Shown: piece after piece, positions 6,226 to 31,066 of the stretch
Layout of the letters: each line of letters begins with the position of its first letter
How positions within the stretch are numbered: position 1 is the stretch's first letter
The notes under the pieces: model-generated
What the model was told of the DNA's origin: nothing
What the model saw: only the letters and a program-made list of their open reading frames with translations
The model's database searches: none
Origin: Utricularia gibba
Taxonomy: Eukaryota > Plantae > Magnoliophyta
Assembly (NCBI GenBank): GCA_002189035.1
Contig: NEEC01000019.1
Coordinates: forward strand, 1,240,001-1,304,000
Reading direction: 5' to 3'
Length of the DNA: 64,000 bases
Made by a program: the position numbers and the translations under genes

Positions 6226-7548
6226 TCACATGACTATCTCCGGGCTGAGTATGTCCCTTCTGATCTCCTTATTTGGCAGGATCACCCCTCCGTTGGTATA
6301 CACTTCATCAGCTACATGAACATCTTTCCCGAGCACGGTCATGTTGTCCACTCGCGCCCACCGGCCGACCGTCGAATGCCACCCGACGATACTTTTAGAA
6401 ACACAGGCATGTTTCTTGATCCAAGCCCCCCTCATCACAGTGCAGCTCGAGAGGCGAACACCGCCCTCGATCACACAGTCCTGTCCGATCACAACGTCCG
6501 GGCCGATCAAGCATCCTTCACCAATCTTGGCAGTCTCATCAATGAGCACATTGCCTAGTATGTGAGTGCCTGAGCTCAACTCAGGTGATGCTTTTTGCCG
6601 CAGGAAGTCCAAGTACAGCCTTAAACCAGCAATGTAGTCTCTTGGTTGTCCGATATCCATCCAGAAACCAGGTAACACCATTGCATACAGTTTCTTCTCC
6701 TGTGCAAGTTCAGGGAATACTTCCTTCTCAATGGATGTCGGGCGTAGCTCGATGCGATCGATAACGGATGGATCCAGCAGATACATGCCGGTGTTGATCT
6801 TGTTGCTGACGAACACCGTCGGCTTCTCCACGAATCTGTCGACGACGCCGGTCGCCTCATCCATTACAACAACCCCATACTTTGAAGGTTCATCCACCTG
6901 AACTCACCATACCAAATTGAAGAAGAAGTGAATACTACTGCAAAAATCAAGTAGGGTAAGCACCTAGACTAGAAGCTTTCCACGCATCCGTACCTTGGTC
7001 ACCATGATGGAAGCCTCACCACTGTGTGACTTATGGAACTCAATCAGCTGCTTCAGAGGGTATTCACTGATAACATCACTGTTAAGCACGAAGAATGGTT
7101 CATTAGAGTTGTTGATCAGTCTTTCTCTTGCTAGAGCAATTGGCCCTGCAGTTCCAAGAGGCTCTGATTCTTGAAAGCAAGTGATCTTTATTCCAAGCTT
7201 CTCCTTAAGTTCTTCCAGGAAGTTCAGCATTTCCTGAGGAGCATAGCAATGTGAACCAGAGCAGCTCAGAGGAAGCACATTCCAATAGGCGAATGAATGA
7301 TTCACCTGAGGTTGATAGCTGATCACAAGGACTACTTCTGTCACTCCAGCATCTTTCAGAGCTTCAATCTGATCACATCGAACCAGATGGATAAACTTGG
7401 CTAGCCAATGAATGAATGTAGTTTTAACAAAAGGTACCTGGTGCAGCAGCATGGGCTTGTTGCCCAAATCAATCAGTGGCTTTGGCACACTCAGTGTCAA
7501 AGGCCTCAGCCTGGTTCCAAAACCTCCGACAAGAATCAAAGCCTTCAT
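6226..7548 (-). CDS. GMP: Mannose-1-phosphate guanylyltransferase / GDP-mannose pyrophosphorylase (CYT1/VTC1 family paralog)
   Basis: Exons 7548-7438, 7368-7306, 7233-6994, 6897-6226 (introns 69, 72, 96 nt). [45 protein letters not shown]-terminal PEIVM*. Frame intact. Confidence 0.95.
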
Positions 7549-25476: not shown

Positions 25477-26076
25477 ATGTCCTTTGGAAGGGGCCGTGGC
25501 TTTGGCCGCGGATTTGGTCGTGGTGGCTTTCGTCCTGTAAGCAAATTACCATATGAGCTATTCCCAGAAATCGAGGATCTGGGGACGGCACGATATACAA
25601 CGGAGAATAGGGATCAGATATCATGGTCCGCAATGCTGCATAGGTCTTGGAAGAATTCCCCTTATTATTACGAAGATACAAACCAACCCCAAAAATCTGT
25701 GCAAAATTCTGAAATAGAGAAGTACTCAGATCGTCAAAACCTGGCCGAAAAAGCCAAGGCTCCAATGTGGCACTTCATGATGCTGGAACCTGATTATTTT
25801 CCAGCAGAGCTGGTTATGGGAACGAAGGGCAAGGCTCCTGCACAGAGGAAAGTAAAGTGGAACCTTGAGTCTGACATGAAAAAGTTTGACCAGTTCGAGA
25901 AGCTTGAACAGAAGCATCAAGAGAATGAAAGCGAGGAAGAGGAGGAAGCAGTGGAGGAAGAGGATGGTGGAGAATACAGTGATGAGGGTGACTATGAGCA
26001 GAATGTAGATTTTGATGATGACGATGATGGTGGTATGGATGATATGGGTGATGGTGACAATGAAGGTTATTACTGA
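25477..26076 (+). CDS. RPC31: DNA-directed RNA polymerase III subunit RPC31/RPC7-like (199 aa)
   Basis: Single coding exon: MSFGRGRG.., LFP, SPYY, IEKYSDR, YFPAEL, FEKLE and a long acidic tail. Probable 5'UTR intron ending at about 25454. Confidence 0.8.
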   Translation: MSFGRGRGFGRGFGRGGFRPVSKLPYELFPEIEDLGTARYTTENRDQISWSAMLHRSWKNSPYYYEDTNQPQKSVQNSEIEKYSDRQNLAEKAKAPMWHFMMLEPDYFPAELVMGTKGKAPAQRKVKWNLESDMKKFDQFEKLEQKHQENESEEEEEAVEEEDGGEYSDEGDYEQNVDFDDDDDGGMDDMGDGDNEGYY

Positions 26077-26646
26077 TCCATACCTCTTGTATTCCCTCAT
26101 TCCATTTTGTTAGGTTTCATAAGTTTAGTTTTTGTAATTTGTTGGGGATGTGTTTGGAGATTTACAGTTGCACACCATTAATTGATTTCTATTCTCCACC
26201 CAAATAAACTTCACCCATTATCTTAAAGTTCACTTTTTTTCATTCTCTATCTATTTTTTTTATCTAATCCATCTCATATATTTCAGATGGAACCCATCTA
26301 ATTCATCAAGTACACTCATACTCATATATTATGAATTCGTTTTGTAACGATTTTTTATGATTACGGATAATGGGTTCAATCCATAACGAGTTAATTTGAT
26401 GGATATCCGAATTAACATGTATTCATGTCCATCTTAATGTACACACTATGACGGGACGACATGCATGGGCTGGGCTGGTGTTGGGCCAGATATATGTGGG
26501 TCTTATAAGACTATAAATTTTCGTTGGAGATGCCGCGAAAGAGCAGTTGCTCATGTTCCAAATTTTCTTCTCCGGAATTTTGTCTCTCCGTCCAGAATCA
26601 CCCTTCAGTTCTCGCCGAATTTCAGTGATCTCTGCGGAGTTGGAGG

Positions 26647-27856
26647 ATGGAGCACCTGAATGAGGAGGAAATAGGAAAAATCAAGCAGATTTTTGATGAA
26701 CTGGATATGGATAGAAATGGTATGCGGACTTTCTTCTCTCGCTCGTACTGATGTTGAAACCTTCTCTAGCTGCTTTTCTTGATCGCGATGACTGAATTTT
26801 TTACATTTTTATGTTCTGTTTAGATCTATTTCACATAATTTGGAGTTTCAGTTTCTACTTTTCTTGTTTTCCGTAATTGCTTCCTTCTTATATTGGATCA
26901 GCATTCTCATCCACTTTGTCAAATTATTTTTCGTTTTCACAAGCATTCGCTGTTTTTCACATATAGCATCATTAGAATAGCTGGATCTTCATGTTCTTCA
27001 ATCGATAAAAACTCAAGTACCTTGTATGTCAAGGTTTTCTGGTTTCCAGTAGAATCCAGGAAGTCTTTTGATACAACTATTACTGGTTGTTGTGAAACTA
27101 CTCGGTGATTTCATAGTTTTCCAAAAAACCATATCCCGGTTCTGATGTAGGTTTCATCAAAGCTGATGAGCTGGAGTCTGTCATGAAGGCTCTTGGACGG
27201 AATTATACTGAAGATGAGCTTAATGAAACGTTGATTGAGTTTCACACTGATCCAGATGGTGACATTGACTTAACTCAGTGTACTAACATGGTGGCTTACA
27301 CATTCAGTGTAACTTGGATTCTGAACTTTCATCTTCACACTGATTCATATTTCTCCTTTAGTTTACCATGTCTTCCTTTTCTTCAAGTTCTTTCCCTGCA
27401 TATGTAGCTCAGGTTCACAATCTGTATTTCTTTACTTCTTTCCGTATGCATTTATCTCGTCACATGTATCTGCAGAGGTTCCTTTCTCCAGCAAGTACTA
27501 CAGCTGCCATCTCCGAGATGAACTCACCATCTCTGGAATCGTTCTTAATGATTGCTTCAGACGAGATGGACTCCTTTGAGGCAGAGATTGTCATAAAATA
27601 CCTAAAGGAAGGCATACAAAATGCCTTGCATTCCAAGGATCTTGGAAAGACAAAGAAACTTGTAGAATCCTTGATTGATATGCATATCCAAGAGCTCACT
27701 CGTGGCCTGTCTGAGAAAAAACAGCTGAACAAGTTTCCACTCTCCAGAATCCTAGGCTTCCTGAATTTCATAACTGTGGTATGCCTCTTCATCGTTTTGT
27801 TCTTCTCCTCAGGAGCCAAGGAAACAACATATTACTCAGGGCCAAGACCAACATGA
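26647..27856 (+). CDS. Calmodulin-like N-lobe (EF-hands) fused to an unrecognised helical domain with a C-terminal transmembrane segment (about 203 aa)
   Basis: Predicted exons 26647-26719, 27151-27308, 27476-27856, phase-compatible and GT-AG. EF1 loop DMDRNGFIKADE is canonical; EF2 HTDPDGDIDLTQ is degenerate; hydrophobic ILGFLNFITVVCLFIVLFFSSG near the end. Site II motifs at 26466-26487 and TATAAA at 26512. Confidence 0.65.
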
Positions 27857-28818: not shown

Positions 28819-30439
28819 ATGATGATGATGATGATGATGATGTTGAAGCTCATCATCGTGGCCACGGTACTTCTCCTGAGCTCACCGTCCACCGGTGAGC
28901 TGCTGAGAATCCGGCATCCAATCAACGGCGACGACACTCTCCAGTTCCTGGTCGTCGGAGACTGGGGACGGAAGGGGGGTACAACCAAACTGAAGTTGCT
29001 TCTCAGGTACGTACCACCGCCTCTGTATATGTATTATGGATTCTTTTGTACTAGTAGAATTCTTGGAGACGTCAAAGGGGTTGATCCCAAGTCAGTTATA
29101 TAGATAGACTACCGTGTTTCAAGGTCGGAGAGTGGAGCCAAACTGTGGAGACTCGGGGCTGCGAATTGCCAGATGACTGTGTGTCATTTTAACGAACATG
29201 GTGGTTATATTTAGTTACTGTGGTTGATCAGATGGGTAGAGTTGGGGAGGAGTTGGCAATCGATTTCGTCGTTTCGACGGGGGATAACTTCTACGAAGAT
29301 GGGCTCACCGGGGTGAACGATCTGAACTTTTTGGAGTCATTCGCCGACATCTACACAGCCCCCAGCTTGCAGAAGCCATGGTTCTCCGGTAACTACATCA
29401 CCTTTTTAATCATCACTGCAGGTATTTGTGTTCATTTTTTAATTTAATTTCGTATGATCAGTCCTGGGAAACCATGACTACAGAGGCGATGTGTTGGCGC
29501 AGCTTTCACCTTCCCTTAGAGCAATCGACCACCGATGGGTGTGCTTCAGATCCTTCATACTTCATTCAGGTATCAATCACATTCCTGGATTTTGGATTCA
29601 GCTCTGCTCATTTTGTATAACGAAGTTCATCAAATTCACTCGGGGATGCTCGACAGGTGCTGTTGAGTTATTCTTCGTGGACACAAGTCCATTCGTGAAG
29701 TCATACGTTTCAAGTACCAAGGAGGATTACGATTGGCGGAGGATTACTCCACTAGATGAATACACTGCCAACCTATTGAAGGTACAAAGATGTTGCTGCA
29801 AACATCCACACTTTTTCTTCTTCCCATTTTCAGTCCCTCCTCTTTTCTGCTAAGTTCATGTTGACCGTAGGATTTGGATTCAGCATTGAGGAAGTCAAAA
29901 GCGGCTTGGAGACTTGTTATAGGCCATCACACGTTGAGAAGCGCCGGCCATCATGGTGATACCAAGGAGCTCGTTGATCTCTTCCTCCCCATTCTTCGAG
30001 TACGTTTTTTCTTCTTTCTTTCCTTTCCTTTCATGTGTTGGGTCCATCGACGTCCTCATTGGTAATGTTGATGATGATGCACGTATGCAGAACAATCACG
30101 TAGACTTCTATATAAATGGACACGATCACAATCTTCAGCGTATCAAGGATCGAAAAAGGTACCAATGAAGTGGATACTTTGATAGACTTCAGACACGTTA
30201 CATACAAGTGATTCATGTTGCAGCGAGACGGAGTTTCTGACAAGCGGAGGGGGCTCTAAGGCATGGAGAGGCGACATAAAAGAGATTGATGAGGGGAGGA
30301 AGAGTTGAAGTTTCTATACGATGGACAAGGATTCATGAGCGTCCAAATTACACCTCTTGAGGCACATTTTGTGTTCTATGATGTTGGTGGGGCGATTCTG
30401 CACCAATGGACTAATCACAAGGCTGATGCTGCTCTCTAA
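28819..30439 (+). CDS. Low-molecular-mass purple acid phosphatase (PAP3/PAP8/PAP17 type), secreted
   Basis: Signal peptide after (ATG)8; metal-ligand motifs GDWG, STGDNFY, VLGNHD, VIGHH, NGHDH; C-terminal SGGGSKAWRG. One -1 deletion at G6 28974-28979. Confidence 0.93.
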
Positions 30440-31066
30440 GTTCGCCTGTGATCATGTGCATGTGTGCATAAGTCTCCCCACAACAGTGTAATGTAAAATA
30501 AGATGGTTTGTGTATGATACTGATATCAAAGAAAATGAGCCCATGCTTTATTTACAATAGAACCAGTGAAGCTGACTTTGCTGAGTTCGCAGCCTACAAA
30601 ATTCAGGGTAAGTTGGATCCCTGACTTCTCATCTTCAATTTCTTTGCTACAGAGAGCAAATGATTCAACACTGCAGAGGTCCGCACATGCTTGTAGCTTC
30701 ACTGAAGAGTAAATCACCATTTGCAATGTGTATACAAATGGCGCTGTGAATTCTAGAAACCAGCTGCAGTTTCATGGACTGATGGTGAACCAAGGGGACC
30801 AGGCGATCGATGAAGAAGATCCAGAAATGATGACTTGCAGATTATGATGGCCATCTGAAAGCGAGGTTTGAGGAACTCCAGGTATTTCTCCAGGAGTAGC
30901 AGGTAGGAGATGATGGGCTTTTAACTCTTGATATCAGTTGATTTCCCCTGCTGTTGATTATGGCAGCCTCTCGGAATACTGTACTACATATGATCTTCTG
31001 TTTCTTCTATCGTTGTCATCTTAGAGTACCATAATATGATCACATGGTTGAAAATCACTAAAACAA

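Follow-up and report, generated by a model that had tools for sequence, protein, structure and literature searches.

What defines the KASH proteins of plants is a tiny module at the C-terminus; the cytoplasmic domains that precede it are unrelated to one another (ARM repeats, coiled coils, TIR or disordered regions). A locus of Utricularia gibba in which exons resembling half of a calmodulin (CaM) stand in frame with a membrane-anchor exon raises three questions: whether the locus encodes a membrane-tethered calcium sensor, which membrane the anchor would serve, and how the two halves came to lie together. A preliminary description of this DNA had proposed that a duplicate of a CaM or CaM-like (CML) gene lost its C-lobe, captured a new exon and so became a tail-anchored sensor of an architecture that it did not recognise. 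Here we follow up this proposal in the whole 64,000-nt stretch of contig NEEC01000019.1 that was analysed (henceforth referred to as the window), in which all positions are given unless otherwise indicated.

A three-exon model with an uninterrupted frame

The gene model is present in the sequence as it had been described: three exons on the forward strand, with compatible phases (1 at intron 1, 0 at intron 2) and GT..AG ends at both introns, add up to 612 nt, that is, 203 codons and a stop. The features of the locus and its flanks are as follows:

25477-26076, forward strand: Rpc31 gene (RNA polymerase III subunit), intronless, 199 aa
26466-26518, forward strand: putative core promoter, presumed to act as such from Site II and TATA motifs found by regex scan
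26647-26719, forward strand: exon 1, with the ATG, helix A and the first five and a third residues of the EF1 loop; phase-1 end inside a Gly codon
26720-27150, forward strand: intron 1, 431 nt, GTATGC..TGTAG, 42% T
27151-27308, forward strand: exon 2, with the rest of EF1 (loop end at 27170), helices B and C, a degenerate EF2 loop (27243-27278) and helix D; phase-0 end
27309-27475, forward strand: intron 2, 167 nt, GTAACT..CAG, 44% T, acceptor TCTGCAG/AG
27476-27856, forward strand: exon 3, a homologue of the last exon of SINE3-like genes
27572-27709, forward strand: conserved helices of exon 3, preceded by a Ser/Thr-rich linker
27749-27805, forward strand: transmembrane helix of exon 3
27806-27853, forward strand: predicted luminal tail of exon 3, 16 residues, ending GPRPT
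27854-27856, forward strand: stop codon of the model
about 28820-30440, forward strand: PAP17-like gene (purple acid phosphatase 17-like), flanking

The introns are richer in T (42-44%) than the exons (22-30%), which is the pattern expected of plant introns, and the start codon lies in a good context, with A at -3 and G at +4. The second donor (AGT/GTAACT) is weak, having T at -1 and C at +5, and an alternative in-frame donor for intron 2 lies at 27290/27291. Read through into intron 2, the frame of exon 2 reaches a stop at 27405, and the frame of exon 3 is open for 108 nt 5' of its acceptor, back to an ATG at 27368. The minus strand at the locus holds unsupported open reading frames (ORFs) only, and an Rfam search over 24-31 kb of the window returned no match.

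Upstream of the model, a regex scan located the Site II motifs and TATA box that the preliminary description had reported: TGGGCT at 26466 and 26471, TGGGCC at 26482 and TATAAAT at 26512, 135 nt 5' of the ATG. The Rpc31 gene ends just 570 bp 5' of that ATG, so the putative promoter is very short. An ATG at 26553 would, if transcription starts 5' of it, begin an upstream ORF (uORF) of 36 codons, which runs across the main ATG in a different frame.

Exons 1 and 2 resemble the N-lobe of calmodulin

In the homology searches the exons were used as separate queries, and their join was used for checks of length, phase, hydropathy and pattern only. A phmmer search with exon 2 matched PDB calmodulin with an E value of 4.5e-11 and ~40% identity over 45 residues, at CaM residues 30-74 and also at C-lobe residues 99-143, in agreement with the earlier claim that residues 1-77 of the model resemble the CaM N-lobe. 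On the 52-aa exon-2 fragment the Pfam EF-hand_7 profile scored 19.4 bits, under the cut-off of 30. Exon 1, a short query, found its best PDB match (E 0.0056) in soybean CDPK SK5, where it aligns with the first helix of the CaM-like domain, and the likeness of exon 1 to this helix is as good as its likeness to CaM.

The position of intron 1 agrees with this relationship. It falls after the first base of the Gly codon for position 6 of the EF1 loop, hence in phase 1. This is the CaM Gly26 site, where every plant CaM gene, and those CaM-like genes that contain introns, are reported to have a phase-1 intron (PMC3751459; PMC1797041); the preliminary description had placed the intron correctly in this respect. 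A further intron is reported in three-intron CaM genes at 'Asp70' in phase 0, and it has no clear equivalence to the end of exon 2 at about CaM residue 78. Exon 2 ends at the counterpart of CaM residue 77-78, so the model contains a full N-lobe with helices A-D and nothing of a C-lobe. No second EF-like stretch or C-lobe was found in the window, so that the model stops short of the four EF-hands and two lobes of a CaM; nor does the window hold a second copy of either half of the model.

The two loops depart from the EF-hand consensus to different degrees. The EF1 loop (DMDRNGFIKADE), previously called canonical, is indeed near-canonical, yet it fails PROSITE PS00018 through the Lys at position 9 alone. 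The EF2 loop (HTDPDGDIDLTQ) fails the same pattern at positions 1 (His) and 12 (Gln), exactly the two substitutions that had been noticed before, and has thereby lost Asp1 and Glu12. In rice CaM and CML loops position 1 is always Asp and position 12 nearly always Glu (PMC1797041). Judged from these substitutions and the invariance of the rice loops, the model likely retains one weakened Ca2+ site, EF1, and one dead site, EF2.

Exon 3 is homologous to the terminal exon of SINE3-like proteins

The preliminary description was right that exon 3 is not CaM-like and that it encodes a hydrophobic segment of about 20 residues followed by a short tail: residues 169-187 have a Kyte-Doolittle mean of 2.8, and 16 residues follow them. 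The view that this was an unrecognisable new exon had to be abandoned. Neither Pfam nor a word search with exon 3 alone gave any match. A HMMER search of 1.84 billion representative sequences returned 13 matches, which comprised 12 true relatives and one repetitive false positive (P0002). The 12 are small plant proteins of 173-327 aa, the C-terminal 100-150 residues of which align with exon 3 to the last residue; the best is from Orobanche gracilis (E 3e-11, 44% identity), and identities between exon 3 and its kin are ~36-44%. Used as a profile (alignment A2), these relatives matched 50 proteins, from Lamiales, Asteraceae, Camellia, Actinidia, Withania, Cuscuta, Pistacia and Euphorbia, and the member from Euphorbia lathyris (P0059) carries the NCBI name 'protein SINE3'. 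The 50 matched proteins contain no Pfam domains, and a Pfam search of nine family members, P0002 counted among them, found nothing. Exon 3 is thus homologous, from its first codon to its stop, to the terminal exon of an existing, uncharacterised eudicot SINE3-like family of putative KASH proteins, full-length members of which start M[KR][DE]xQxQTPQ.. and end in a transmembrane helix and a short tail closing P-x-P-T.

The tail module is spread widely through the asterids (Lamiales, Asteraceae, Ericales, Solanales) and occurs in some rosids, with members in Sapindales and Malpighiales; tandem copies were seen in Erythranthe and Buddleja. This range extends beyond the restriction to Brassicaceae that is quoted for SINE3 in recent work (PMC11511747); distant SINE3 homologues in other dicots had been noted by Zhou et al. 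(PMC4050730).

Exon 3 encodes the C-terminal transmembrane domain and short, putatively luminal tail that belong to plant KASH proteins of the WIP/SINE type. An AlphaFold2 model of exon 3 alone predicts helices at residues 20-51, 59-82 and 89-113, that is, two cytoplasmic helices and the transmembrane helix, with a mean pLDDT of 62 that is too low for a fold search. The published pattern for the last four KASH residues is [DTVAMPLIFY][VAPIL]PT (Zhou et al. 2014, PMC4050730), and the PRPT of the window fits it in the P at -4 and the final PT, with an Arg at -3 that lies outside [VAPIL]. Many family members likewise have an off-pattern residue (T, K or S) at -3, so the pattern of 2014 may be drawn too tightly for the SINE3-like family. 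Since exon 3 is the terminal exon of that family, its anchor is most likely a nuclear-envelope KASH module and not a generic tail anchor.

The exon 2-exon 3 junction and the conservation of exon 3

Family genes in Erythranthe and Orobanche have exons of 96, 123 and, for the last exon, 417-450 nt, and all of their introns are in phase 0. Aligned with the last exon of the Orobanche gene, exon 3 begins at the same codon, and it ends at the family stop, so that intron 2 of the model would use the native phase-0 acceptor of the family; the exon shares with the family its homologous sequence, the position of the preceding intron and the phase of that intron. Both tblastn and a profile HMM run on the six-frame translation failed to find the N-terminal exons of the family (MRDLQLQTPQ-type, 96 and 123 nt) in the window, so that, internal ATGs aside, no further exon lies in frame 5' of exon 3 there. 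As a separate observation on the gene structure of the family, the Orobanche gracilis SINE3-like gene (L003:10186-10830) carries a tandem duplication of the symmetric 123-nt phase-0 exon, and a Striga protein shows the same repeat, the duplicated exon lying within the disordered cytoplasmic part.

In 13-sequence alignments (A1 and A2), exon 3 keeps 4 of 4 invariant columns and seven near-invariant ones, including the terminal P-x-P-T. In a 41-sequence alignment it retains the family residue in 13 of the 24 columns conserved at 80% or more, in 21 of 49 columns of medium and in 4 of 48 of low conservation (Fisher p 0.013), and many of its changes are conservative; other long-branch members keep 15-16 of 21-22 highly conserved columns. 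These counts point to some constraint on exon 3, weaker than that on canonical members. In a tree built from C-terminal regions, the window sequence is nested among core Lamiales (with a support of 83/96, which does not settle the placement), and its terminal branch measures 1.6 where the median is 0.19. The long branch and the reduced conservation fit relaxed constraint as well as they fit a new function.

The searches found no second combination of an EF-hand lobe with this anchor

None of about 60 SINE3-like relatives has an EF-hand, no similarity to exon 1 or exon 2 was found among them, and seven related loci contain no EF-hand exons. An orthologue with the same architecture was found neither in a collection of 15 billion proteins nor by an exhaustive search with exon 3 nor by the family profile search. 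The separate exon searches that the preliminary description had recommended found CaM-like sequence for exons 1-2 and an existing family for exon 3; the architecture as a whole, which had been reported as not recognised, had no match in these searches.

The locus also stands apart in its surroundings. It is flanked by the Rpc31 gene and the PAP17-like gene, with PPR and CDK5RAP3 genes farther out. Seven canonical loci, which represent six species of Lamiales (Erythranthe, Orobanche, Paulownia, Sesamum, Andrographis and Buddleja), were compared with it; none is syntenic, and exon 3 is all that they have in common with it. In three of the six species an IBH1_N gene follows the canonical SINE3-like copy. 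Because synteny is lacking, exon 3 is most simply a dispersed partial duplicate. Capture by a Pack-MULE-type element was considered and rejected, no terminal inverted repeats or flanking repeats being present; the sole finding was a 17-nt direct repeat in two copies (15 of 17 positions identical), one in the EF2 loop coding part of exon 2 (27241-27257) and one in intron 2 (27334-27350), which is probably a chance likeness and may be a small local duplication. Elsewhere in the family, P0010 (Phlomoides rotata, 327 aa) and P0011 (Salvia miltiorrhiza isoform X1) have unrelated N-termini in place of the MRDLQLQTPQ start, which are either further N-terminal swaps or annotation merges.

A proposed exon-shuffled chimera and its alternatives

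We consider that, with a probability of about one half, the locus is an exon-shuffled chimera that would encode an EF-hand protein anchored at the nuclear envelope. On this reading, the promoter and first two exons of a CaM-type gene would have come to sit 167 bp 5' of a dispersed copy of a SINE3-like last exon, and a splice joining exon 2, at its phase-0 end, to the native phase-0 acceptor of that exon would yield a tail-anchored protein of 203 aa. If it behaves like Arabidopsis SINE3, this protein would enter the ER and the outer nuclear membrane post-translationally, and its short luminal tail ending Pro-Thr would bind SUN proteins and so keep it at the outer nuclear membrane. The EF-hand lobe would then face the cytoplasm at the nuclear surface, as a protein-binding module that might be Ca2+-modulated or Ca2+-independent. 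The sequence itself shows how the exons are arranged, that both halves have homologues with which they share positions and phases of introns, and that the N-terminal exons of the SINE3-like family are missing; the splicing, expression, SUN binding, localisation and Ca2+ binding of the 203-aa protein are what we infer. Of the origin first proposed for it, a CaM or CML duplicate without its C-lobe joined in frame to a non-CaM anchor exon survives the in silico analysis, and the novelty of that exon does not.

Several features count against a functional chimera, namely the weak second donor, the possible uORF, the long branch, the want of a matching orthologue, the Arg at -3 and the PS00018 failures, and four of them would be equally at home in a possible, though unlikely, alternative: that a rearrangement placed a truncated CaM-like fragment beside a stray SINE3-like last exon, that their common frame is fortuitous or belongs to a decaying, short-lived chimera, and that no stable 203-aa protein is made. 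A locus without synteny to the canonical loci of the six Lamiales species, an exon 3 that is a dispersed partial copy, and lower conservation at constrained columns would all follow from such an event, a compatible phase alone is expected about once in three times by chance, and a frame break in the PAP17-like neighbour indicates that decay or assembly indels do occur nearby. What speaks against a non-functional juxtaposition is that 203 of 203 codons have stayed open despite a divergence that has left ~40% identity to CaM and ~36-44% to the exon-3 kin, and that exon 3 still has its transmembrane helix, the terminal PxPT and every invariant A1/A2 column; in addition, both introns have canonical ends and T-rich composition, and the acceptor in the model is the one native to the family. 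Should the model prove unexpressed, the locus would be one more decaying juxtaposition of gene fragments.

It is improbable that the halves give rise to two separate products, exon 3 being translated from an internal start as an N-terminally short KASH protein and exons 1-2 forming a small EF-hand protein (109 aa, by read-through of intron 2) or an untranslated leader. Candidate internal starts exist at ATG 27368 (a 162-aa ORF), to which the exon-3 frame is open, and at Met15 of exon 3 (~112 aa); the exon-2 frame does read on to its stop at 27405, and annotations elsewhere include short family members (95-173 aa). Several of these, however, are flagged as partial or as 'UNVERIFIED_CONTAM' or are ORFs called on short contigs, the segment 5' of 27476 is T-rich and intron-like and is unmatched in relatives save for one weak match starting at 27404 (P0013), and the family acceptor is conserved in place. 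That the halves were joined by mis-assembly and are not contiguous in the real genome is highly improbable: although the adjacent PAP17-like gene has a possible indel, the join would need to fall within a 167-bp intron-like stretch with proper splice signals on both sides, in ordinary gene-dense surroundings with no repeat at the junction.

If the locus is indeed the exon-shuffled chimera, it would be a clear case of a new LINC-complex component arising by exon shuffling, and it would bring a calcium-sensor fold to the very surface of the nucleus, a place at which plant Ca2+ signalling is under active study. A fuller version of this reading is one that we put forward tentatively and regard as rather doubtful: that the gene encodes a lineage-specific, Ca2+-responsive KASH protein, a CaM N-lobe tethered through SUN proteins at the outer nuclear membrane and produced by recent exon shuffling of CaM-type and SINE3-like genes, which would couple perinuclear Ca2+ to the LINC complex and thereby to nuclear positioning or to the recruitment of CaM targets at the nuclear surface.

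Relation to known proteins

By descent, the nearest known proteins are the SINE3-like family for the C-terminal half of the model and CaM and close CMLs for its N-terminal half, and the nearest by design is KASH5. With the SINE3-like family the model shares the homologous terminal exon, the preceding phase-0 intron at the same place and a tail ending P-x-P-T; it differs in that an EF-hand pair replaces the disordered N-terminus (MRDLQLQTPQ..), and in its Arg at -3, very long branch and non-syntenic locus. Arabidopsis SINE3 (At3g06600) is a KASH protein of 193 aa that is disordered on its cytoplasmic side and ends in a transmembrane domain and a tail closing with PLPT (PMC11511747), and its localisation to the nuclear envelope needs the last four residues together with SUN1/SUN2 (PMC4050730; PMC11511747). 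SUN binding and SUN-dependent localisation have been shown only for this Arabidopsis protein (PMC11511747; PMC4050730). The protein encoded by the model would resemble it as a small protein with a C-terminal transmembrane helix and a luminal tail of ~15 residues, and the link between the two is drawn from these shared features and the NCBI name of one family member (P0059). With plant CaM and close CMLs, the model has in common the EF-hand pair with helices A-D and the Gly26 phase-1 intron, and it is set apart from them by the missing C-lobe, Lys9 in EF1, the loss of Asp1 and Glu12 in EF2 and an identity of ~40%.

Mammalian KASH5 has the same design, with an N-terminal cytoplasmic EF-hand pair and a C-terminal transmembrane helix followed by a SUN-bound KASH tail, and the chimera, if real, would be a convergent parallel to this animal protein. 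The EF-hands of KASH5 are described as a protein-binding (dynein) module (PMC10071310). The comparison is one of analogy only, as the proteins have no sequence relationship, and KASH5, unlike the model, has a long coiled coil and recruits dynein. Seed plants are not known to have cytoplasmic dynein. A 2020 review of the plant nuclear envelope leaves EF-hands unmentioned.

Other membrane-tethered calcium sensors of plants are built differently. OEF18 (At1g64850) is likewise a small plant protein with one working cytosolic EF-hand and a C-terminal membrane anchor, and reaches the chloroplast envelope and peroxisomes via AKR2A (bioRxiv 10.64898/2026.08.13.744648). It was ruled out on architecture, by its description, as a known family to which the window protein might belong: it has an N-myristoylation site, an EF-hand at about residue 79 and two transmembrane helices with a KK/R motif, whereas the window protein has none of these. 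The CaM53/OsCML1-type proteins and AtCML4/5 are also CaM-type sensors tethered to membranes; OsCML1-3 owe their C-terminal extension to an additional exon that became fused to a CaM gene (PMC1797041), and AtCML4/5 are single-pass membrane proteins (PMC4915527). In contrast to the model, they keep four EF-hands and are attached by prenylation or an N-terminal signal anchor, with no C-terminal transmembrane helix and KASH tail.

Observations on neighbouring genes

The last exon of the PAP17-like gene (30222-30445) contains a change of frame near 30290-30300, in a G/A-rich run, where the protein reads ..AWRGDIKEIDEG in one frame and EELKFLYDGQGFMS.. in another and the first frame meets a stop; this is either a real frameshift, which would make the gene a pseudogene, or a homopolymer error of the assembly. 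At the start of the ORF of the same gene (28820-28843), eight ATG codons in a row encode a poly-Met run before a signal-peptide-like stretch. Farther upstream in the window, on the minus strand, an exon of a VTC1/GMPPB (GDP-mannose pyrophosphorylase) gene (6226-6897) is 73% identical to Arabidopsis VTC1 over 223 residues. This identity is low for a VTC1 enzyme and hints, on an uncalibrated scale, at a fast-evolving lineage or a relaxed paralogue.
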